From Trichosphaerium sp. ATCC 40318 (taxonomy: Eukaryota > Protista > Tubulinea), in assembly GCA_038496445.1 (NCBI GenBank), contig JALMLS010000027.1, positions 220,552 through 284,551 on the forward strand: a stretch of DNA of 64,000 nt, in the 5' to 3' direction. The translations under genes were made by a program, and so were the position numbers. Shown piece after piece: positions 13,045 through 27,027 of the stretch (positions are counted from its first letter, which is position 1; each line of letters opens with the position of its first letter). The notes beneath the pieces are model-generated. The model was not told where the DNA came from. It saw only the letters and a list, made by a program, of their open reading frames with translations, and did not search any database.

Positions 13045-15604
13045 CTATCCGAGTCTCACGATACCAGCGGCTATCAATGTCTCTATTTTCTTGGCTACGA
13101 TTGGATCTTTCAAATGGCTAGAGAAAAGAGAAATAAGCGATAAGAAAGCAACATAACAGTATCACATGTACATAAAACAAACACAACAAATTCTTGTAGT
13201 TTTTTTTGTGATAGTTGTAGACAAAAAGTTTGAGCAGGGCTACAATCGCTTTTAAACGTTGAAGTATAACCCATTTCTGGTTTAAAATAATATGTTTAGC
13301 AGGGACGTACACTGCAGCGGCGTTAGGATCGTTTTTCATGTCTTGAAGTGCTTTTTGAATGACAGGGTCACGCAAGATTTTCTAAAGCGAAGTGAGTAAC
13401 TAATTGATTTTTTTCTTGTTTTAGAATCAAGGTACCTGGATTTCTGGATCTTGCATAGCGGCTTGAGCAGCTTGCTCGTTTCCACCACCACCTTGCATCA
13501 TCTGAATGGCCATCATAGCTTTTTGTCTACCTTGTTGCATTTCCTAGTGACAAAGCTTAGAATTTTGAAGAAGCACAGTGCTTATTGACATACTCTGTTT
13601 GTTGGATCAATAGCAAGCCCCTTATCGTATACAGTCAGGCATTTGTAGTATTCCTTCTTCATTTCATATACGTAACCCTTTCTAATGTATGATTTCACTA
13701 ATAAATTATTAGTACAACAAAATAGAAACGACTGTCACAGATAAAAAAAAAGTTTGAAAAACATACAGTATTTTGGATCAATCTCTATAGCTTTGTCACA
13801 ATCCTTGATAGCTTCAGGGTATGCCATCAATTTAGTGTATGCAGCAGCACGATTTGAATAAGGCACGCAATTGTTAGGATCACGTTTAATGGCCTAAAAT
13901 AAAGTCAATACATAAATTAAACACTAGTCAAAGCGGTTAAAAAAACGAACCTCAGTGTACTCTTTCACTGCTTCTGGGTACTGACCACCTTTGAAAAAAT
14001 CGTTACCTCTCTTTTTGGCTGCGAGAGAGAGTTCTGGATCAATGTAAGCTAGCTTTTTCTTCTCCTCCCAAATCTTTTCAGCCTAAAATGAAAAAGGTCA
14101 GTTTGAGGTTTTGCTTTTGAAAAAAAAATTCATTAATGCCTTTTTCAAAGCTGAAAGAGTTCTGGCGTTTCTGTCATCAGTAAGTGCATTTTTATAAGCT
14201 TCAATTGCTTTTTCGTATTCCTCTTTCTTCATGAGAGCATTACCAATACGATGAGTAGCCCTATTAGAAAGCCAATAAGTCAACTGGTTTTTTTTTCAAA
14301 AGCAAAAAAAGGCAAAAATCTTACTTGGCGCGAAGGGCGAAGTCTGCGTAGTTTTTCTTGCCAACAGCAAGGGCTTCTTCACAATCAGCGATACAAGTAT
14401 CATAATCACCTTTTTCAAAGTGAACAGCAGCTCTACAAAACCGATTTAGCACTACGTTGCTTCATTATAACATCATACCTGTTGGACAAAAATACCATGT
14501 TCGTTGAATCAGTCTCAAAAGCTTTTGTGTACCATTCAATAGCCTCATCAAACTTTCTTGCCTTGTAAGCAACGTTTCCCTTTTGTTTTAATTCTTGGGA
14601 TGCTTGTTGCTCTGCAGTCAACTCAACCTTTGTTTCTTCTTTTTTTTCTACTTTAGCTGGTTTTTTTTCTGGTTTTTTGAGTTTATCCCAACCGGCTTGA
14701 TTCCAGTATAAAGCGGCTTGAATATACGTCTGGATTTGAATATCTTGTATATACCTGTATTCAAAATTAGACCTCCAAGAGTAAAAGTAACGATATGTGG
14801 CAACAAACTTAAAAGTTTTTGGATTTTAAAAGGTTTTTTTTGTAAACGCACTCTGAAACTTTTTGAGGGCTTCCTTGAATGGTACGGAGCTTTGTGATAA
14901 ATGCTTTATCCTTAGCGAATGTTTGGGTTTGAGGCATCATCAACGCACGCTCTTCAACATCACCTTGGATACACGTAAGTTGTCACCTCAACAAAAGATT
15001 TTTATCAAATTTTGTTTGTTTTAAATGCGCGTACCGCTGAATGCTATTGGTAGTTGGCTGTAAAAGTTCTTGGTAGCTTCTTCCCTTTGCTTTTTGGTTT
15101 TGTTAAGCAACTCTTGGCATTGCATAAACTTCGCTCTGATGGTTTGATTGTTTGGGTCAATTTGAAGGCCTTTGGCGACGGTTTAGTAATTTTTGTGTTG
15201 TTAGCGTTGTACCCTTCTGGAAAGAAGCGATGGCATCTTCGTAATGCTCTGTTAGCTGTAGAGCTGTACCGCGTCTGGAATAGCCCTGGATACATTAAAA
15301 CACGAGAATAAGCACGTATTAGCGTACTTTTGGCCAGTCAGGTTTCAATTTGATGACCATATCAGCGTCCTCCAAGGCTTTGTCATAAGCGCCACTGCTT
15401 GCATGCGCTCCTGATCTGTTACTGTAGTAGACATGATTTGTTCCATCAAGTTTGATCGCTCCTGTAAAGTAGCTGACAGCTTGTCGGAAGTCTCCTTTAG
15501 CAAAAGAAGCGTTTCCCTTTTTTTTTAACTCTAATGCCTTTGGTGGGTTAGAAAATGTAACGTAGTACTCCTATTACTTGTGCTTTTGCCTCTGCGGTTG
15601 CCAT
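13045..15604 (-). CDS. STI1: Hsp70/Hsp90 organizing protein (TPR1-DP1-TPR2A-TPR2B-DP2)
   Basis: ALELKKKGNASF...YYSNRS...LKPDWPK; ELKQKGNVAYKARKFDEAIEWY; YIDPELSLAAKKRGNDFFK; AMQDPEIQKILRDPVIQKALQDMKNDP; C-terminus LIAAGIVRLG*. Confidence 0.95.
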
Positions 15605-15878
15605 AGGTGTCTTTCTCCGTTTCAACTACAAAAAAAGGCGAGTTTCACGCGAATTTCACCAAGTTTTTCTCCTTCTTTCCGAAGCGCTGGGATAACTACT
15701 TCAAAGTATAATTCTCAAGGTTACGGTAGAATACGCGCCAAGAACTAGTATGAGCCTGTTAAACAACTATTAACCAATGTAACTAAGTCGTTAACCGATT
15801 GAGTATTGGCAACTTGCCATTCAAACAAAAGGTGGATAAACATCCGTTTTTAATACAGTACAATCCGCTACAAAAATG

Positions 15879-16836
15879 CTAGTTCGACCCTGGCAAATGT
15901 ACGCTTATGCTCAAATAGTCACCAGTTTTGAATCTAAGATCTTTTAGCGACCTGTCGCTTCCGTTTCTCGTTGGTGTAGAGCCTACAGGTTCTCTAAATC
16001 TTGTTAAACCATTCCTAAAGTAGTCAGATATATCGCTAGTACTACAATACGGGTGGAGAGTTTGTCCATGGATATGTAAACAAACAATAAACAAAAGCAT
16101 GCTAGTACCTTGGATCTGGGTACATGAAGCGAAAGCCAAATCTGGCTTGTCTGTTCCTCGCCTCAACATTCACTTTCTTTACAAGATCGGTAACTTCGCG
16201 TAAAGTAGCGTCCTAATAAATCATAAGATAAAAAAAGAGGTGTCACTATTTTGAGTCAAAATGTCGTGCCATCCATGTGTAAATCTGAACTTCGGATTCT
16301 TCTGGTAGTTTGCCATCAAAGTCAGACTCTCTACGACGGTATTTAGCGTATTGTTGCTGTGAACATAATTTTTATTTTATTCAACGTACTTGTGGTGGTT
16401 TCCAACTTTGAGAAATACGCGTAATAGAAGGGGACATGTCTGTTAAAACAATTAATTGGTGGCGTTTTTGTGATAACTCTTTGAACTTGCCTTTTCTCTG
16501 TCAACCTTGAAATTGGTAGCATTACGTGTAGCAAAGACCTTTCTGCCTCTATTTGGTGGTGCTCGCCTACAAAACACGATTTTAATTAACTTCAACGCTG
16601 GCAGTGTACCTATCACCGCCCATGCGCCTATCAGCCGGTCTGCCACCTCTAAAATCTCTTCTGTCTCTGTCCCTCCTGTTATCCCTCATATCTCTGTCTG
16701 ATTGCCATCTACCACCTCGTGGGCCTCCTTTATCACCACGAAAGCCTCTATCGCGTGTCGGCCCTCTATCGCGCCTATCATCTCTCCTATCATCCCTGCG
16801 ATAATTGTCCCTGTCGTTTCTACCACGGTACGACAT
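15879..16836 (-). CDS. SAP18: Sin3-associated / ASAP-complex protein SAP18 with RD/RG-rich N-terminal extension
   Basis: KVDREKTCPFLLRVFLKVGNHH, EVQIYTW-DATLREVTDLVK, LKDLRFKTGDYLSISV are SAP18 signatures. Confidence 0.92.
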
Positions 16837-17150
16837 TTTGTAGTGGCTTAAGCTCAAGCTGTTATTCCGTTAAGCAGCTAATTCGTCATACCCTTTTGTT
16901 ACAACACCTCCAATCTTGTACGTACACATCTTCATTCATCCCAACGAATACGCGTTTACTGGAGCACCGCTTTTTTTTTGCTGGCATTTTACGTGTTCCC
17001 CAACGAAAACGTTCGTAAATATGTTCCTGAAATCACTCTTATGGTGTAATTTCGTTTCTTTAAATTGAGGGGAACGAACAGTTTACCACTACTTTCTTAT
17101 TGCATATTTTATTGTCGTTATGGGCTGTACACCTAATATGTATTCAGAAA

Positions 17151-18825
17151 ATGGCAAGACAAGCTCCTTTAAAACCTTGGCAAACTGGTAGCGCTGATGG
17201 CCCTCCTACAGCTACTAGCGCGTTAGCTCTTCAGTCCCCGAGCGCTATGAGCGCTGCTGGAAGCACCAGTCCAGCAATTCCTGCTCGCGATGGTACAGGC
17301 GTCTCGCCTGGTTTTTCCACGTATGGTGGTAGCTACAATACAGCAGGCATGCTAACACGTTTGCCACATTTTGTTAATTATTCAGCAGGTGGATACGGAA
17401 GTAGTTACGGCAGTAGATATGGCAGTGGGTATGGTGGCTATGGCGGTGGTACGTAATATTACAATTCTTCCATTACATTGGGAAATACGAGTTTCCTTGT
17501 TTTTTTTTTTTGGTTTGGCGATTATTACTTTTTTTTGGCTTATTTCTTATTTCAAGGCCTCTCGAGCTATGGTGGCGGGTATAATCGATTTGGTAGTTCT
17601 TATGGAGGCTATGGCAGTAGCTATGGTAGCAGGTATGGCGGTGGTTACGGAAGTAGTTTTGGAAGCAGTTATGGCGGTGGTTATGGTGGTGGCTATGGAA
17701 GTAGTTATGGCGGTTACGGCGGTGGCTATGGTGGTTATGGCGGCGGAATGATGCAAAATGGACAAATGGGTCCTCAGGGTGGCATGATGCAAAACGGTGT
17801 ACGTAGTATTATATTAATCTAACAGTGCTTTTTCACATAAGAGCCTATTCAGTTTTTTTTTGTTAAAACCCTTCTACTCGTCAGCGTCTACGTGTCATTT
17901 ATTTATTTTTTTTTAATTTTATTCTAGATGGTACAACGCGGTATGGGATGGCTACAACAAATTGAATCTGTCACAACAAATGTTGGCCGATTTTCTTGGC
18001 TTTTGGACACAAACTTTCAAGCTGTTCATGGTTCCTTTACTTCTATTCTACAATTAATAGAAGGAGTCACAATACTCACTAGAGAGCTCGGTTGCACTTT
18101 CTCGAGCATTTTCATAATTAAACTATTCTACGCGGGTTTACGACGTATAATCAATATGGTAATGAAAGCAATGGGCGCTAAAGAGGAGTTTAACCTCAAA
18201 GCGTTCGAAAAATTTTCAGAAGAGTCAAATGTGGCTGCTTCAGCTGGTGGAAAGCCTAAACCAAAGAACAAAGCATACTGGGCTTCTATTTTCGTTACAA
18301 TTGGCGTTTTTTGTATTGGTGGACCTCTTTTGATTGGAATAATTGAAGGTATAATTAACCGCGTACGTGGTGGTAAAAAATCAGGTTCAATGGATAAAGC
18401 TTGGGGAAAAGGTGAAAGAATGAGGTACATAATACAAATACACGTGTAAAATTTTTTTATTTTTCCCAGCCGAAAAAGCACACTTGACTGATTTTTATTT
18501 CGAATTTTTCGACTTTTTGAATGAAATAAATGACTGGAAAAATTGTTAAAACTCTTTTGTAGAGCTCAACATGATTATCGTGCTCAGCGACGTGATGAGT
18601 TGGAATTTAGAGCAGGTGAAGTTATAGTGATAAAAGGTATGCAAAGCTTTTTTTTTTTTTTTTTTGGTGTTTTATTAATCTTCTTTGTTAGAAAAACCTT
18701 TTGATAAATGGTGGGTTGGTGAAATTGAAGGTGTCATGCCACCTCGGGTGGGACTTGTACCTTCGACTTTGTTGAGTCCAATTGTAGAAACTGTTAAAGT
18801 AGAACCTGTAGAGCCTGTAAAATAA
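17151..18825 (+). CDS. PEX13: Peroxisomal membrane docking protein Pex13
   Basis: N-terminal PLKPW, YG/YGG-repeat region, [28 protein letters not shown] segment ending GGPLL, C-terminal SH3 ([19 protein letters not shown]...WWVGE...GLVPS). Confidence 0.93.
17568..17746 (+). repeat. Coding low-complexity Tyr-Gly repeat of Pex13
   Basis: Repeated tatggtggc/tatggc units encoding YGG/YGSS. Confidence 0.85.
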
Positions 18826-19612
18826 GAAAATTACTGTTTACTACGCTGTTTGTTTGTTTGCTATTCTCCACAATGTTGTACGTGTTAAAAAACTGGTGAT
18901 TTACAAAGGGTGTAGTAGATGTTCTCTATCATAGGGTCCAAGTGAGGGCGTAAATGAGGCAATAAAACCTATTGCTATCGGTCAATATTAATGTAATGTC
19001 TGTATTCGATATTGGATTCTGAGATGCGAAGTTGTGAAGTAGTAAATCAGCCAAAAGAAAAAACTGAAATTTCGCTAAAAATACACGTAATGAAAATTGT
19101 AAGCAAAAATCGTGGAGTATCCAAGTTTTTAATTAAAAAGTGTATTTACAATAGAAACTGATGTATGTACTCACGCGTATTTAGCGTCATCGCTAGTGCT
19201 TCTAATCTTATGTCAAGTTAAAAACACGGAAAATAGCCTATTTCGGTTTAGAAGTCACACAACCAACAAATAACTAGTAAACTAGTATATTTCTCCTTCT
19301 ATCCCTAAAGTAGAGTTGTGTTAGCTATCACTTAATATGACTACACTTCATCTGTCACGTGATCACAGTTGTTAGGACAACATCGTACAGGTTGATAAAA
19401 CCTTGGAAGCAGTACAAAAAGCACGTGGTTAGCATTTTATAGAAACTTCGCGTCGCTTAAACATTTCCAGCTCAAGGAGAAATTCGAAGTGTCCTCTGTT
19501 CACAAGTATTTGGCTTAGCTTGGATTAAGTTTTTTAAGTCATTATTTTTAGCGAAACAACATTATGACCACCTGACGGCAAATCAAACGAGCCCAAAAGG
19601 GGGGAAGCGATA

Positions 19613-22545
19613 ATGTCCAACCTGAGGGGAGGTCGCAAGAAAGCGTCAAATAAGCGCAAAGCTCCAAAAGCGCCACTATCCACCAGAAGGGCAGCAAAAA
19701 AGCAAAAGCACTTGACAGTGGCGTCAGTGATGACTAAATTTCCGCGAAGGGAGCTGCGCGCCATTTGTTCTGCTCTAAAGTTGAGTACAAAAGGCCGTAC
19801 CGCTCAACAATTAGTTGATACCATTGAACAGCATCCTAAAACACGTACGGTAGCCTTTTTTTAGTACTTTTTTTTTTTTTTTTGCGTTTAATGACACTTA
19901 TTGATCAATAACCGTTATTCTAGTCCAATTGAAGCGTTTGAAGGTGCCAGAATTAAAGGATCTATGTAGAAGCCTTGAAGTGCCAATTGGTAAAAAAGTA
20001 AAGGCGCAATTGGCCGTTAGTCTCCTAACAAAGTATAAACGTACGCTTTTTTTTTTACCGCGGATTTTTCAAACTGCCGCGTGTTTTTGAAAAACGGTTC
20101 AAAAAAATACCTGGAATTACTTGTTGTGTTGCCTTCTAATCAATGCTCTGTAGTACCCAAACCGGCCATTCGACCAAGAGTAACCAAGGGATCAACCCCA
20201 ACTTCCCAAGCTCTTGCCGGTAAAGTAAAAAAAAGGCGCAAATGTCGCCGAATCATCAAAATAAAACGAACTCGTAAGACTCCAGGCTCGTCTACACGTG
20301 CCACAAGCGAACAAAAAGCCTCGAGATCCACTGGTCCAATCGCACCCGCATCTCCACTGAACATATCTGTCAGTAGGCGGTCAAGTGGAAGCTCAACTGA
20401 TTCAATATCATACAACGCATCTGATTCTCCAGAAACTACCAAATCTAAGCGCCTTCGACAGGTGGTCATCACAAATGAGGGTTATGAACAAGAAAAGAGC
20501 GTGAATAATGCAATTCTTATGAGCGAGATTCGAAAATTGAAAGCGAAAGATGCTCAAAGAGACGCGAAAGATGCTGAAAGAGACGCGAAAGATGCTGAAC
20601 GAGATGCTGAAGTGCGTGCCACAAAGGCGCTGGCGAAATCAAATGAATATGCAATTGCATTGATAAAACTGCGAAAGGACCACCTCCATTCTCTCTCAAT
20701 ATTGAGTACGCTCAGTTTTTTGACCACTCTTTTTTTTGTGATAACACGTGTACTCAAATGACACTCACACTTAATTTTATTGTAGAGTACTCAGAACTGT
20801 ACAGTAAATTCGACAACCTTGGAGATATACTATTCAAGGAGAACTCATGGTTCGACGGTTCATGTTTGAAGTATTTTCGCGGACTGCCTAAAAACGTGTT
20901 CGCAAAGATGCTCAAGCAACAAACAGCCACAAAAACCACAGATAAACCAAAGAAAACCTGGCAACAAAAGGAAGACTACCTCACCGAGAAAACTGTTGAA
21001 CTGTTGAACAAGGGTAATACGTCTGATTACATGATGGCTTTTGACGCCAAAAGTAACCACACATTTCCAAAAACATCTACGCACGGTTTTGCCAAACCAG
21101 ACATTCTCCTGGCACCTAGAAACCTTGGTATTACGTTGCCAACATCGTATCAGATTATAGTACCATGGGAGGTGAAGTTGGTTGTGGGACAATCCAAAGG
21201 TTTTGAACCAGCAAAACTCGGACAAATAATGTACGGACTTCTTTTTTCTTCTCTTTTGTGTGCATTGTTGACCTAGTTCTAGGATGTATTGTATTCGTGT
21301 CATGTCTGCTCAGCCAACACGTACATCAGTGACAGCAGTTATTTCAAATGAAAAATACGTCCAGTTCTTGCGTATGGAGTGGGACGGCATAACTGCAAAA
21401 GGCGATAAATTCTATTTTACAGAAGTTTATGATTTTGTTGGTAAAGACTCTGAGGGTGCAAAGATGATCAACCAACTCATGGCATGCTCTCCTGAGCAAC
21501 TTGGATGGACCGTACCTCAGTTTAAAATCGGTGGGACTTACTATGCAGCAACGAATATTCTTGGTAAAGGTGCATCAGCATCTGTCTACCAGGTCCGAGC
21601 AGATGATAAGACTTATGCTGTAAAACATCTCCTTCCAAAGTACCTGCCAGAGGCGAAACATGAAGTGAAAATACTCAATAAGCTAAAGCCATGTGAGGAT
21701 GCTCATGTTCCAACAGTAGCACGTACCTCTTGGAAACCTGGAAGACAAGTACGTTTTGGTTTTTTATTCTTGATTGGAAAGTTTTGTGTTTTTTTTCCTT
21801 GTTTGTACTGACGTTGTTACCAGAACCCTAACAAGATATTTTTCGTATCTGAACCCGTGGGTCAAGTGCTGAGCGCAGATGAATTCTCTATTACAGGCCT
21901 CGTGTGCTCATTTTCATCTCTTGTTAAGACACTACAGGCTGCACACAATTTAGGATTTGTACACAGGTATGCTCATTCACGTGGGTTTTTCTTATCTTGA
22001 ACTTATTATGTCCTCTTAATTAACTCTTTTTCTCTTTCAGGGATATCTCACTTACAAACGTGATATGGTTTGAAAATGAGTTGTATATTATTGACTGGGC
22101 ATGTGCTGCTAAAAAAGGTGTGGAAGTTCTGTTCCAAGGCAACGTTCTGTTTGCACCTTCAAAATTGTGTCTGGAGTACAAACGTGATGTCAAATTTACT
22201 CCACGACCATGGCACGATCTCGTATCCCTTGTCAAGATGTATGCATACTTGACACTACCAAGGCAAGCTCGTATCGAGTGTTTTATTGAACCATTCGAAC
22301 AAATTGATTGGGTTACAGATCCACAACGTAGTTTTGCTGCCCAAAAGAAACTTAGTATGAATTGGGAAAATTTACTCCCTTATTTCAAAATACCTATGGC
22401 GTATGCACAAAAAACAGACTATGCCAAACTTGGAGCATGGTTTGATGAGAAGTTTATGTGGAGTAACCTTAAGACCGTCACTGATGAAGACGTGAATAAT
22501 GCCACATATGATGAAGGAAAACCAATTGGTCAGCGATTTTCCTAG
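19613..22545 (+). CDS. Crinkler/CR-type effector-like protein, copy A: basic NLS + 2x SAP/HeH + coiled-coil repeat + PD-(D/E)xK nuclease + protein kinase
   Basis: Exons 19613-19844, 19924-20040, 20154-20705, 20786-21230, 21283-21748, 21824-21966, 22041-22545, all in frame. SAP-like RRELRAICSALKLSTKG...QQLVDTI and LKRLKVPELKDLCRSLEVPIG..KAQL. REase AKPDILL...WEVK...LGQ. Kinase LGKGASASVY, YAVK, HEV, VHRDISLTNV, IIDWA, HDLVSLV. Confidence 0.85.
20543..20605 (+). repeat. 21-bp coding tandem repeat (AKDA[Q/E]RD x3)
   Basis: gcgaaagatgct(c/g)aa(a/c)gaga(c/t) three times; an expanded/rearranged version occurs in copy B at ~24935-25110. Confidence 0.9.
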
Positions 22546-23006
22546 CTTGTAAAATAGATTGATAGATTTTGGATTGATAATAACACACATTGTAAATATT
22601 GTTTTCTTCACCCTATTAAATAAACTTATCACCCAAAGTATCTTGAAATGACTAGTGGTTTGTTGTATTCTGGTAACCGTGTACGAGATTTTTAACAGGA
22701 AATACTAACTACAATAGGGTGGCGTGGGAAAGTACGTGTATGGAACAAGCTAGGTACATTTCTTCCATCTTACATAAAATAAAAATGCTGGTTGGATTCT
22801 ATTTGGTTTTTATTCCACGATAACCGAGTCTGTTTTTATTTTTTATAACCTACATGATTTTTTTGAATCTTCACACTGAAAATAAACGCATAGTTTGAAT
22901 CCCATCACCGAAAATAAATACACAGTTTATTCGATAAGGTGAAAAAACCCCAATATTTACAATGTGTGTTATTATCAATCCAAAATCCATCAATCTATTT
23001 TACAAG

Positions 23007-25434
23007 CTAGGAAAATCGCTGACCAATTGGTTTTCCTTCATCATATGTGGTATTATTCACGTCTTCAGCAGTAACAGCCTTAATATTACTCCACATAAAC
23101 TTCTCATCAAACCATGCTCCAAGTTTGGCATAGTCTGTTTTTTGTGCATACGCCATAGGTACTTTGAAATAAGGGAGTAAATTTTCCCAATTCATACTTA
23201 TCATCTTTTGGGCAGTAGAACTACGTTGTGGATCTGTATTCCAATCAATTTGTTCGAATGGTTCAATAAAACACTCAATACGAGCTTGCCTTGGTAGTGT
23301 CAAGTATGCATACATCTTGACAAGGGATACAAGATCGTGCCATGGTCGTGGAGTAAATTTGACATTGCGTCTGTACTCGATACACAATTTTGAAGGTGCA
23401 AATAGAACGTTGCCTTGGAACAGAACTTCCACACCTTTTTTGGTAGCACACGCCCAGTCAATAATATACAACTCATTTTCAAACCATATCACGTTTGTAA
23501 GTGAGATATCCCTGAAAGAAAAAAAGAGTTAATTAAGAGCATAATAAGTTCAAGATAAGAAAAACCCACGTGAATGAGCATACCTGTGTACAAATCCTAA
23601 ATTGTGTGCAGCCTGTAGTGTCTTAACAAGAGATGAAAATGAGCACACGAGGCCTGTAATAGAGAATTCATCTGCGCTCAGCACTTGACCCACTGGTTCA
23701 GATACGAAAAATATCTTGTTAGGGTTCTGGTAACAATGTCAGTACAAACAAGAAAGAAGGAAAAGAAAGAAAAAAACCAAACGTACTTGTCTTCCAGGTT
23801 TCCATGATGTACATGCTACTGTTGGAACATGAGCATTCTCATACGGCTTTAACTTATTGAGTATGTCCACTTCATGTTTCGCCTCCTCCAGGAATTGTGG
23901 AAAGAGATGTTTCACAGCATAAGTCTTATCATCTGCTCGGACCTGGTAGACAGATGCTGATGCACCTTTACCAAGAATATTCGTTGCTGCATAGTAAGTC
24001 CCACCGATTTTAAACTGAGGTACGGTCCATCCAAGTTCCTCAGGAGAGCATGCCATGAGGTGGTTGATCATCTTTGCACCCTCAGAGTCTTTACCAACAA
24101 AATCATAAACTTCTGTAAAATAGAATTTATCGCCTTTTGCAGTTATGCCGTCCCACTCCATACGCAAGAACTGGACGTATTTCTCATTTGAAATAACTGC
24201 TGTCACTGATGTACGTGTTGGCTGAGCAGACATGACACGAATACAATACATCCTAGAAACTATGTTAGCAACACACAAAAGAAAAAGCAAAAAAGTGACA
24301 TTCAGGAGGTCATACATTATTTGTCCAAGTTTTGCTGGTTCGAATGTTTTGGATTGTCCCACAACCAACTTCACCTCCCATGGTACTATAATCTGATACG
24401 ATGTTGGAAACGTAATACCAAGGTTTCTAGGTGCCAGAAGAATGTCTGGTTTAGCAAAACCGTGCGTAGATGTTTTTGGAAATGTGTGGTTACTTTTGGC
24501 ATCAAAAGCCATCATGTAATCAGACGTATTACCCTTGTTCAACAGTTCAACAGTTTTCTCGGTGAGGTAGTCTTCCTTTTGTTGCCAGGTTTTCTTTGGT
24601 TTATCTGTGGTTTTTGTGGCTGTTTGTTGCTTGAGCATCTTTGCGAACACGTTTTTAGGCAGTCCGCGAAAATACTTCAAACATGAACCGTCGAACCATG
24701 AGTTCTCCTTGAATAGTATATCTCCAAGGTCGTCGAATTTACTGTACAGTTCTGAGTACTCTACAATAAAATTAAGTGTGAGTGTCATTTGAGTACACGT
24801 GGTACAAAAAAAAGAGTGGGGTCAAAAAACTGAGCGTACTCATTATTGAGAGAGAATGGAGGTGGTTCTTTCGCAGTCTTATCAATGCAACTGCAGCGTC
24901 AAGTCCGTTTAATCGTGCCTCTGTGATCTTCTCTCTCGCGTCCCTTTCAGCATCTTTCGCGTCTCTTTCAGCATCTCTTGCATCTCTTTCAGCATCTCTT
25001 TGAGCATCTTTCGCTTTCAATTTTCGAATCTCGCTCGTAATAATTTCACGTTGTGCATCTTTTGCATCTCTTGCTACATCTTTCGCTTTCAATTTTCGAA
25101 TCTCGCTCATAATAATTTCATCCATACTCCTTTCTTGTTCACAACCCTCATCATATGGTATTGAACCAGTTGAGCTTCCACTATATTTATTTGACAGACC
25201 TACGCGTGTGGTAGGACTAGTTGGCCTCAAGGTCTTTGGTGTGTGCGTAATACGGCGTTTAGTTGGACAAGTTCGTTTTATTTTGATGATTCGGCGGCCT
25301 TTGTTTGCCAAATGTAGGGCAGGTGTTTTGGTTGCCTTTTTTTGCTTTTTGGCGAGCCTGTCGGTGTTTAGTGGCGCTTTTGGGGCTTTGCGCTTATTTA
25401 ACGCTTTCTTGCGAGTTTCTCTGAGTTTGGACAT
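23007..25434 (-). CDS. Crinkler/CR-type REase + kinase protein, copy B (lacks the SAP/HeH exons)
   Basis: Inverted paralogue of copy A with the same intron positions in the REase/kinase part and intact PD..EVK..Q and HRDISLTN/DWA motifs; shorter, divergent N-terminus. Confidence 0.85.
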
Positions 25435-25884
25435 GTTCGGCGCTGTGCCCTTGTGGGTTATGTGTAATACAAGTGTTTGCTACCAGTGGTCATTGTGTTG
25501 TTTCGTTAAAATAATGACTTAAATGCTGATACACATGTGAACATATAAATGTATATAAATGTTAGACACGTGCTTGAACAAGAGGCAGAGCGCTAGCTCA
25601 TACTGTATTATTCACGTGCTTTTTGTACTAGTGATTACAAAGTTGTGTCCATCTTCTCCACAAACAAGAACAAGCGTTGCCCAGATCTGCAAGATTTAAT
25701 AGCAAAGTGCATGTTCAACAAGAGCCAGTTTTCTTCGTTGTGGTACTTGTAAAAAAACAATAAACGTAAACTTTGGGTAAGGTATACGTCATACTAACTG
25801 GAACAAACTCCAAGTAAGCTTCTTCCATCTTATACATAACGATAGGACAAGGTGACTTGCTTGGTTTTCGTTCCACATTTACAA

Positions 25885-27027
25885 CTAATCATTCTTTATT
25901 TTACTTTTTACACAACAACATTTATATAGGCTGTACGTAAGTATCATCAAACCTAAGACAGCGCCAATGCATAATACCATAAAGTATTTGATGATAAAAC
26001 TCATTTCATCTAAGTTACATAGCATAGGAGAACCGTGTTTAGGAAACTTTTCACAAAACAATTCTGTGTATCTTTCTTTGATTGTTCTTTCATCCTTAGC
26101 TCCCAGTGGCTTTAACACAAAATCAAACTTCACATCATTACCTTCAGGTAAGCGTAGTGACAACATGTTACTACCTAGCACTGCCAATAGCATAAGTAAG
26201 AGTATGGTACAACGTGAAGTACGTACCATCATGTGAGCCAACCAAAGATGCACGAAAGTCATGCTCAGTAGCCGGGTCATCGTCAAAGTACAGTTGAGTT
26301 CCCAGTGGCTCGTATCCAGGATGGCTTACAATTGCGTGAATATGTCTAGGACCAAAAGGAGGAATATCCATATGATTACCAGTCCAGAAGAACAGGCCTA
26401 GCTGAAGATTAAACTTGTTTGGTAGAAAGCAATAATAGCTCACCATATGCTGACGGTTTCACCGTGGATATCACGTATCCTCCGGCTTCATCCGATGATA
26501 TTTTTCCTCTGCAATAAGTCCAGTCATTCCCCACTCCGTAGTTTCCAGAACCATCAACTTGCCAAATGTCAATAGTGGCGTTTTTAATAATATCTCCAGA
26601 ATCAGCATCTTTTACTGTGCCACGGATAATCAAACTGCGTGTTTATTTAGTGATGGGATTCAAAAACTCTCAAAGTGCCTCTAACCTCATGTCATCGTCT
26701 GCTACGAACTTCCGCCTCCAACAAAATCCTCCAACACACGAATCGGCGTCACTGAGGTAAGAAAATAAGTGCTAAAAAAATGTTGTAGTTTCGTTTTGTT
26801 TTACCTTATGTAATAACCTGAAAAACCTTCAGTCGGGCATATTTGAGATCGCTCAGGCGCATTTAGAACGTAAACTGGTCCTACAATGAGTTTTAGCGTT
26901 AACTACTTTTGAGAAAGTTAATTTGAAGGAAAGGAAGGGTACCAAGGGCAGTTTGAAGCGTAGGACTGAGTTTTTGTGATGCTGCCAAGCACGATAGTAT
27001 GCACAATGATAAAAATAGAAGATGCAT
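25885..27027 (-). CDS. Intradiol ring-cleavage dioxygenase-like protein with signal peptide and C-terminal TM anchor
   Basis: MHLLFLSLCILSCLAAS signal; ALGPVYVLNAP; IIRGTVKD..IDIWQVDGSGNY; CRGKISSDEAGGYVISTVKPSAY; PRHIHAIVSHPGYEPLGTQLYF; VKFDFVL; TM FMVLCIGAVLGLMILTYSLY then KCCC. Confidence 0.85.

Follow-up and report, generated by a model that had tools for sequence, protein, structure and literature searches.

Convergent nuclease-kinase paralogues in the amoeba Trichosphaerium sp. ATCC 40318: a gene pair with a homogenised 3' enzyme module

We have analysed two convergent genes, here called A and B, which lie in a 64,000-nt stretch of DNA (the window) from Trichosphaerium sp. ATCC 40318 and which together form an inverted repeat of approximately 6.2 kb. 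The window corresponds to C62:220552-284551, where C62 is our handle for contig JALMLS010000027.1 of assembly GCA_038496445.1 (70.3 Mb, 642 contigs); other contigs are designated in the same way. Gene A (19613-22545, + strand) and gene B (25434-23007, - strand) both contain introns, and both are intact. In the interpretation that we favour, to which we assign a probability of about 0.72, A and B are paralogues from a large, lineage-specific amoeba family, they represent old A+B partners whose 3' enzyme module has been homogenised by gene conversion, and each may encode a nuclear nuclease that is gated by a kinase.

In this interpretation, conversion has repeatedly overwritten the end of the coiled-coil region, the nuclease and the kinase within each locus, such that this module stays 92-98% identical and the 5' parts, with a putative function in targeting, stay distinct. 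We infer that the proteins would be nuclear by virtue of their basic N-termini, which resemble a nuclear localisation signal (NLS), and, in gene A, of two SAP-like DNA-binding motifs, that they would dimerise through the coiled coil, and that the nuclease domain would cut DNA. The fused kinase would then gate or neutralise the nuclease, as has been reported for CRN8 and the Spok proteins, whose domains are arranged in the same order. Because copy number is high and turnover rapid, the family may have a role in genetic conflict, either in defence against invading DNA or as a selfish toxin-antidote system.

Gene structure, family copies and concerted evolution

Exon coordinates of the two genes are given in Table 1. 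All 10 introns are of the GT-AG type, 9 of them start with GTACG or GTATG, and each exon is open in its phase. The initial annotation described both genes as intact nuclease-kinase genes, and we observed the sequence elements KPD...WEVK...GQ, GKGASASV, AVK, HRDISLTN and IIDWACA in A as well as in B. The ratio of nonsynonymous to synonymous divergence (dN/dS), counted per exon and over whole codons only (515 codons from the nuclease-kinase exons), was 0.32 for window A versus B; the other pairs of copies all gave values of 0.15-0.34. By these sequence criteria, A and B are under purifying selection and functional. The coiled-coil repeat of exon 3, for which the alignment is unreliable, gave a dN/dS of ~0.8 or higher, that is, about neutral or faster. 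Within gene A, 5 of the 6 introns start with GTACG (positions 19845, 20041, 20706, 21231 and 21749), an unusually rigid pattern for introns of 53-113 nt.

Queries in this work were either single exons or the gene B frame that continues through intron 4 (window:23742-24788:-). A six-frame search of the genome with this open frame of gene B gave 66 exon-level matches. These correspond to at least ~50 genes genome-wide, so that the copy-number check proposed in the initial annotation places the genes in a multi-copy family and not among single-copy genes. Seven copies form a close subfamily, whose members are either of A-type, with SAP exons, or of B-type, without them (Table 1). An A+B pair is present at three loci, and is convergent in the window, head-to-tail 43 kb upstream on C62, and head-to-head on C229. 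The junction at which the SAP exons are missing is identical in all three B-type copies, which indicates that the A/B split happened once; the flanks of the loci have nothing in common.

Comparisons among these copies gave different groupings for the 5' and 3' parts of the genes. Identity in the 5' part follows gene type, with 98-99% between the window and upstream A copies, 96-99.5% between the corresponding B copies, and 70-82% between A and B. In contrast, identity in the 3' part, from the nuclease exon to the stop codon, follows the locus: the C229 A and B copies are 92-97% identical to each other and only 82-86% identical to the C62 copies, and any two of the four C62 copies share 93-97% identity. 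Maximum-likelihood trees resolved an A clade and a B clade for the 5' partition (support 100/99 each); for the 3' partition, they joined the C229 A and B copies (100/100) and placed the four C62 copies in a cluster with no resolved branching. Synonymous divergence (dS) of the nuclease-kinase exons was 0.082 for window A/B, 0.107 for the C229 pair and ~0.44 between loci. Since the 5' and 3' trees are discordant, we conclude that homogenisation of the 3' enzyme half took place inside each locus, once the loci had become separate. Among the C62 copies, 20 sites of the 3' module join the window pair against the upstream pair and 9 show a crossed pattern, and the type-specific differences that remain lie mostly in introns 4 and 5. 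These sequence comparisons support the conclusion that gene conversion homogenises the 3' module in tandem, divergent and convergent pairs alike.

It had been suggested beforehand that the inverted geometry of A and B favours gene conversion. The discordant trees are in agreement with conversion as such, but the tandem and head-to-head pairs are homogenised to the same extent, and the emphasis on geometry was therefore misplaced. Probably, the 6.2-kb palindrome is incidental, a by-product of concerted evolution between two genes that happen to lie tail to tail. Duplicated genes in inverted or tandem repeats evolve in concert by gene conversion, for example in the palindromes of sex chromosomes. 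Like the palindromic gene pairs of sex chromosomes, A and B exhibit arm identity above that expected from the age of the duplication, mosaic tracts and sharp borders; unlike them, A and B are homogenised in the 3' enzyme-coding part only, and a palindrome is not required.

We considered that the inverted pair might have been created in assembly, as a fold-back chimera or from two haplotypes joined head to head. Some uncollapsed haplotypes are probable in this assembly, given that twin family matches with identical scores occur on C93/C479, C194/C567 and C80/C157. However, the arms of the inverted repeat differ by ~5% and by intron indels, the 5' halves do not have the same structure (only A contains SAP exons), and both copies are under purifying selection; for these reasons an artefact is unlikely. 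Moreover, the spacer is asymmetric, each copy has its closest relative, as judged from the 5' identities given above, 43 kb away, and no second contig matches the region at ~100%. Taken together, we regard an origin of the pair in assembly as extremely improbable.

Several other members of the family should be mentioned here. The A-type copy on C268 has no region matching window 21227-21803, which contains the exon for the kinase N-lobe, and is probably a pseudogene or a truncated variant. At C229:13244-13310, just past the 3' end of the B-type gene, there is a lone extra segment of A-type upstream sequence that includes an exact copy of the 16-mer GTACAAAAAGCACGTG described below; it may be the scar of a rearrangement that gave the head-to-head order. 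A second tail-to-tail inverted pair is located at C30:185330-188529, with arms that are a mosaic of 73-97% identity and a spacer of 510 nt, and its copies match DUF6826 directly. A third convergent inverted pair (C16:~461690-465990, 80-88%) lies within a C16 cluster at 430-500 kb that has at least 8 members in mixed orientations. Two paralogues, L014:2023-2475 and L027:1912-2205, have lost catalytic nuclease residues (ExK changed to D-I-T, or PD to PC) and retained the kinase part. Twin family matches with identical or near-identical scores were seen on C470/C261 as well as on the three contig pairs named above, and all four pairs are probably uncollapsed haplotypes.

Predicted domains and fold of the proteins

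Proteins of the family have a variable N-terminus, followed in order by a coiled coil, the predicted nuclease (a divergent DUF6826) and the kinase. The front ends of the two proteins differ. Exons 1 and 2 of gene A matched the Pfam SAP model PF02037 at 23.0 bits (E 6e-5) and 21.2 bits (E 2e-4), respectively, where the cut-off is 23.9 bits; SAP identity of these exons, as judged from two adjacent near-threshold matches, is likely. In gene B, the same basic start joins the linker directly, without SAP exons, and the coiled coil carries a 72-nt internal duplication (24992-25120). High identity between A and B begins inside the coiled-coil exon, at ~20509. Visual examination of the A and B N-termini revealed no hydrophobic signal peptide.

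For the nuclease part, Pfam scans of single exons yielded only weak Pkinase/APH and near-threshold SAP matches, and a word-index protein search with the 349-aa read-through open reading frame of gene B yielded no match. We therefore turned to family alignment A1, composed of 36 exon pieces and natural read-through frames of paralogues, as the profile for a HMMER search of the whole library. This search gave 377 proteins at E<=1e-3, 62 of them at <=1e-10, with a best E of 2.5e-22, and most of the matches are one stretch that runs from the nuclease region into the kinase N-lobe. In a Pfam scan of 60 of the matched proteins, DUF6826 was present in 53 (best E 3.7e-36) and Pkinase in 46; Pkinase_fungal was matched weakly in 24, and 2 had the N-terminal domain of Crinklers. 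Named relatives include Entrophospora protein P0006 (Crinkler 7-107, DUF6826 213-284), an Arcella protein with SAM_3, DUF6826 and kinase, and a homologue from Nematostelium. The positions of DUF6826 in these proteins coincide with the profile core DTH...KPD...ExK...GQ. Applied to the genome directly, the DUF6826 hidden Markov model (HMM) matched paralogues on C30 at 30.4 and 27.1 bits (cut-off 26.6) and, just below the cut-off, on C176. DUF6826 is not mentioned in the papers available to our search.

A first AlphaFold model, of the 349-aa frame with the nuclease and the kinase N-lobe, had a mean predicted local distance difference test score (pLDDT) of 64. In Foldseek and VIA comparisons of this model, matches to the kinase N-lobe dominated (Z ~10), and the nuclease domains of BpuSI and DrdV were matched at Z 8.3-8.6. 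A second model, restricted to the first 250 residues (nuclease only) and built from a 70-row alignment, reached pLDDT 75 with a core above 90, and a predicted template modelling score (pTM) of 0.77. The ~20 residues coded by intron 4 form a low-confidence loop (158-179) in both models. The nuclease-only model has an alpha-beta-beta-beta-alpha-beta order (H68-85, E92-96, E116-120, E135-139, H151-158, E194-200), in which KPD, whose P114-D115 are nearly invariant, immediately precedes strand 2 and WEVK forms part of strand 3.

Compared with 48,161 representatives of the PDB, nearly all of the top 50 matches to the nuclease-only model are of the restriction-endonuclease (REase) fold, at Z 7-10. 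Highest are the mitoribosomal chains 7a5f_s3 (Z 10.0) and 3j7y_5 (Z 9.5), which we take to be REase-like mitoribosomal proteins, followed by DrdV (Z 9.3 over 142 aa, root-mean-square deviation 3.4), BpuSI (Z 9.1 over 140 aa) and the Leptospirillum REase-domain protein 9y1l (Z 8.8). Lower matches include Cfr10I, SgrAI, Bse634I, NucC, NgoMIV, HsdR of EcoR124I and of V. vulnificus, Hjc, Can2 and McrC. Because this list is near-uniformly REase and the positions of the motifs fit, we consider the assignment of the modelled nuclease part to the PD-(D/E)xK restriction-endonuclease fold solid, and metal-dependent activity is predicted. DUF6826 thereby gains a fold-level reading as a restriction-endonuclease-like domain.

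With regard to the kinase, both copies have the set of Gly-rich loop, VAIK Lys, alphaC Glu, HRD..N and DFG Asp, in the form GKGASASV, AVK, E, HRDISLTN and DWA. The N-lobe is matched by PDB kinases at Z ~10, and the last exon can be aligned with PDB kinases, though weakly, over the segment between HRD and APE. Across the last exon of 19 paralogues, the catalytic Asp, the catalytic-loop Asn, the DWG/DFG Asp and the subdomain-IX Asp (D1, N6, D18 and D59) are invariant or nearly so. The catalytic loop, HRDISLTN, has Ser in place of the usual Lys. From these residues, kinase activity is predicted for A and B.

Several points weigh against our interpretation of the genes as a homogenised pair for kinase-gated nucleases. 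A partial re-duplication of the 3' half within a locus would yield the same trees as conversion. In the two C62 pairs, the 3' modules differ more (dS 0.08-0.15) than the 5' parts (1-2%), which goes beyond a simple conversion model; to account for it, either extra donor sequences must be invoked or the 5' parts must have been homogenised at a later date. The transcripts of A and B, their splicing and the resulting proteins are predicted, and both SAP matches fall just below the Pfam cut-off. The window copies themselves gave no direct DUF6826 match in a Pfam scan at E<=1; their putative membership in the DUF6826+kinase group is transitive, by way of the family profile and the paralogues. In a collection of 15 billion proteins there was no near-identical protein (best match 96 bits), and the proteins of this species are absent from that collection. 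Finally, the structural Z-scores, at 9-10, are moderate.

The inverted repeat, its spacer and its flanks

The inverted repeat was described in the initial annotation as a palindrome of ~6.2 kb from 19411 to 25629 with stop codons ~460 bp apart. We observed that its ends coincide with exact inverted copies of the 16-mer GTACAAAAAGCACGTG, and that 461 bp lie between the stop codons, whose ends are at 22545 and 23007. The arms extend over ~20509-22601 and 22951-25048, and across them the 3' ~2.1 kb of the two genes are 94-98% identical. Four long blocks (Table 1) are collinear, the innermost arms are separated by 349 nt, and weaker inverted matches (79-91%) extend to 19608/25439. A global alignment of the left side with the reverse complement of the right side agrees with the repeat finder; beyond ~20509/25048, the two sides can be aligned only in part. 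In view of its length and identity, the repeat cannot have originated by chance.

The arms had also been described as near-identical over ~2.1 kb, introns included. This holds for the 3' part as a whole, and for introns 3 and 6 and the initial 55 nt of the 3' untranslated region (UTR), which are close between the arms, but not for introns 4 and 5, where the arms diverge most (13/53 and 11/60 mismatches, in addition to indels), and the 5' parts of the genes differ strongly.

Table 1. Coordinates of the genes, domains, repeats, neighbouring genes and subfamily copies. Positions are those of the window unless preceded by a contig handle.
Feature	Position	Strand	Remarks
Gene A, 819 aa, 7 exons	19613-19844, 19924-20040, 20154-20705, 20786-21230, 21283-21748, 21824-21966, 22041-22545	+	
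Gene B, 717 aa, 5 exons	25434-24840, 24760-24316, 24252-23787, 23726-23584, 23511-23007	-	
Basic NLS-like N-terminus and two SAP-like motifs (exons 1, 2)	19613-20040	+	A-type copies only
Exon 3: basic Ser-rich linker, then KDAERDA-type coiled-coil repeat	20154-20705	+	
Predicted PD-(D/E)xK domain	20786-21500	+	KPD, WEVK, GQ..Y; split by intron 4; divergent relative of Pfam DUF6826
Predicted protein-kinase domain, exons 5-7	21500-22545	+	GKGASASV, AVK, E, HRDISLTN, DWA, HDL
Inverted block, 589 nt	22013-22601/22951-23539		Repeat finder; complementarity of the four blocks ranges over 95-98%
Inverted block, 510 nt	20733-21242/24304-24813		As above
Inverted block, 492 nt	21277-21768/23767-24258		As above
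Inverted block, 219 nt	21792-22010/23540-23758		As above
Upstream 16-mer GTACAAAAAGCACGTG (contains CACGTG)	19412-19427	+	~190 nt before gene A ATG; outer left edge of palindrome
Upstream 16-mer GTACAAAAAGCACGTG	25613-25628	-	~190 nt before gene B ATG; outer right edge of palindrome
Intergenic spacer	22546-23006	.	Outermost ~55-80 nt on each side are arm sequence
PEX13-like gene	17100-18450	+	Peroxin-13_N, E 1e-18
Intradiol ring-cleavage dioxygenase-like gene	26171-26633	-	Pfam Dioxygenase_C; split by intron
A-type copy (with SAP exons)	window gene A	+	
A-type copy	C62:199174-202397	-	
A-type copy	C229:6478-9880	-	
A-type copy	C268:~15428-18090	-	
B-type copy (no SAP exons)	window gene B	-	
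B-type copy	C62:196339-199039	-	
B-type copy	C229:10164-12839	+	

Homology between the copies ends sharply at ~19398 and ~22722, beyond which the flanks share nothing. Such borders might be expected if the 3.3-kb gene units were mobile DNA elements that inserted side by side, and a proposal in the passages of PMC5289972 on Crinkler-RHS-type (CR) proteins, that their REase modules derive from mobile elements, points in the same direction. However, the unit borders showed neither terminal inverted repeats nor target-site duplications, and no transposase was observed; the borders correspond to promoter and 3' UTR, as is expected for conversion confined to pre-existing homology. Because introns are retained, the copies are not retrocopies. 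Insertion of mobile units is, in our estimation, very unlikely.

Exact copies of GTACAAAAAGCACGTG occur 4 times in the 70-Mb genome, all at promoters or boundaries of the A/B subfamily. When one mismatch was allowed, the motif xTACAAAAAGCACGTG had 27 genome matches, compared with 5 for a reversed control, and is thus enriched; it may represent a CACGTG-containing promoter element of general occurrence.

The central ~300 nt of the spacer consist in part of unique sequence and in part of an A-type 3' UTR tail. In principle, read-through of the 350-460 bp between the genes would generate a duplex of ~2.1 kb, and Dicer products of this hairpin, as small interfering RNAs (siRNAs), could restrain the pair and its close paralogues. 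The arms contain 26 exact runs of at least 21 nt, totalling 1433 nt over ~2.1 kb, the genome contains an Argonaute/Piwi gene together with at least five loci for RNA-dependent RNA polymerase, and the family includes the two further convergent inverted pairs on C30 and C16. On the other hand, each gene has its own AATAAA (at ~22621 on the + strand and ~22927 on the - strand) ~75 nt beyond its stop codon, and A+B pairs have been kept in tandem and head-to-head arrangements with equal conservation. Further, neighbouring members of the family are convergent in 3 cases, divergent in 2 and in tandem in ~7, which matches random orientation and gives no indication that the convergent layout is favoured. 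The idea of self-silencing by siRNA is drawn from geometry, and we consider it improbable; concerted evolution in a pair that is tail-to-tail by chance of arrangement is the account that we prefer.

The flanks of the pair are ordinary, with PEX13 to the left and an intradiol-dioxygenase-like gene to the right, and this is to be taken as a correction to the initial annotation. The matched part of the PEX13-like gene is preceded by a Gly/Ser/Tyr-rich region made up of 12-nt repeats (17376-17737). Rfam and tRNA scans of the window gave no matches.

Comparison with Crinkler, DUF6826 and Spok systems

In pathogens of plants and animals, REase-kinase modules are known as the toxin heads of Crinklers; spore killing by Spok is driven by the same order of domains. 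According to the passages of PMC5289972 that summarise Zhang et al. 2016, about one-sixth of CR C-termini consist of an REase coupled to a kinase; toxicity is there ascribed to the REase and regulation to the kinase, and an origin in prokaryotic mobile elements is proposed for the REase modules. The same passages state that, in Phytophthora infestans CRN8, REase mutations abolish cell death and kinase disruption does not. Like CRN8 and other CR proteins, the amoeba proteins have a PD-(D/E)xK nuclease directly followed by a kinase, are predicted to be nuclear or directed to DNA, and belong to lineage-specific expansions. Unlike the case of CRN8, delivery into another cell is not implied, since the amoeba has no known host, and the N-terminus is basic and NLS-like.

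The genes had been classified at the outset as Crinkler-type. This classification is appropriate for the REase-kinase module, in view of the DUF6826+Pkinase matches, one of which has a Crinkler header, and of the REase fold, but it fails for the header itself: in Pfam scans, the Crinkler header (PF20147, LxLFLAK) was absent from the N-terminal exons of A and B, and the PF20147 HMM had no match in the whole 70-Mb genome and likewise none in any control genome. By sequence, the amoeba genes are not Crinkler effectors in the strict sense; they are header-swapped, with a SAP-like and coiled-coil front. The locus provides a clean, intact amoeba example in which a nuclear-looking front end replaces the delivery header. 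The catalytic module, whether described as CR-type REase-kinase or as DUF6826+kinase, was already known; the front end and the paired concerted evolution are new.

Proteins with DUF6826 and Pkinase, some of which match Pkinase_fungal/FunK1, occur in Glomeromycotina, Zoopagomycota, rotifers and Amoebozoa (Arcella, Nematostelium). The amoeba family shares with them the motifs DTH...KPD...ExK...GQ, HRDxxxxN and DWG. It differs from them in that the window copies have diverged too far to be recognised by the Pfam model, and in that the homologues bear other N-termini (SAM_3 in Arcella, Crinkler in Entrophospora).

The Podospora Spok proteins also have an N-terminal coiled coil whose repeat is variable, followed by a PD-(D/E)xK domain with a QxxxY motif and by a kinase (PMC6660238). 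In SPOK3, the nuclease substitution K240A abolishes killing and the kinase substitution D667A abolishes resistance (PMC6660238), and SPOK1 causes DNA damage in E. coli and yeast (PMC9972908). For proteins built in this way, killing by the nuclease and resistance by the kinase is thus a tested working model. The Spok literature that we found makes no mention of Crinkler. We considered whether the amoeba genes might represent a non-fungal counterpart of Spok, in which one protein combines the poison (nuclease) with its antidote (kinase) and which would persist and increase in number by killing cells, spores or fusion partners that do not carry it; A+B pairs would then be co-inherited, and homogenised enzyme modules would keep neighbouring copies mutually immune. 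The likeness extends to the order of domains, namely a coiled coil with a repeat of variable length, a PD-(D/E)xK domain with Q..Y, and a C-terminal kinase (PMC6660238 for Spok), and to membership in a multi-copy family that spreads by duplication, the amoeba family showing fast turnover and local duplication. Also, the HsdR fragment of V. vulnificus (3h1t), the reported best HHpred match of SPOK3, is among our structural matches (Z 6.2). Neighbours in a language-model Atlas, whose scores are to be taken as leads only, were DUF6826 (0.95), Pkinase_fungal (0.94) and SPOK2_N (0.90), and for the nuclease part alone SPOK2_N (0.76). Yet the Cys/His cluster that precedes the kinase in Spok (C-x3-C-x13-C-x5-H-x7-H) is absent from family alignment A1, in which a single Cys (LSCTP) is conserved between nuclease and kinase, and purifying selection in a housekeeping setting would suit a host defence gene equally well. 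We therefore view a Spok-like drive function as a tentative and rather unlikely reading, and retain the broader interpretation of A and B as concertedly evolving partners that may encode kinase-gated nucleases. As a working analogue for the amoeba genes, Spok is nevertheless the best available; the architectural likeness is striking, and any homology is putative. If the Spok-like reading were correct, Crinkler REase-kinase toxins, fungal FunK1/DUF6826 kinases and Spok drivers would constitute one ancient class of selfish or defensive nuclease-kinases.

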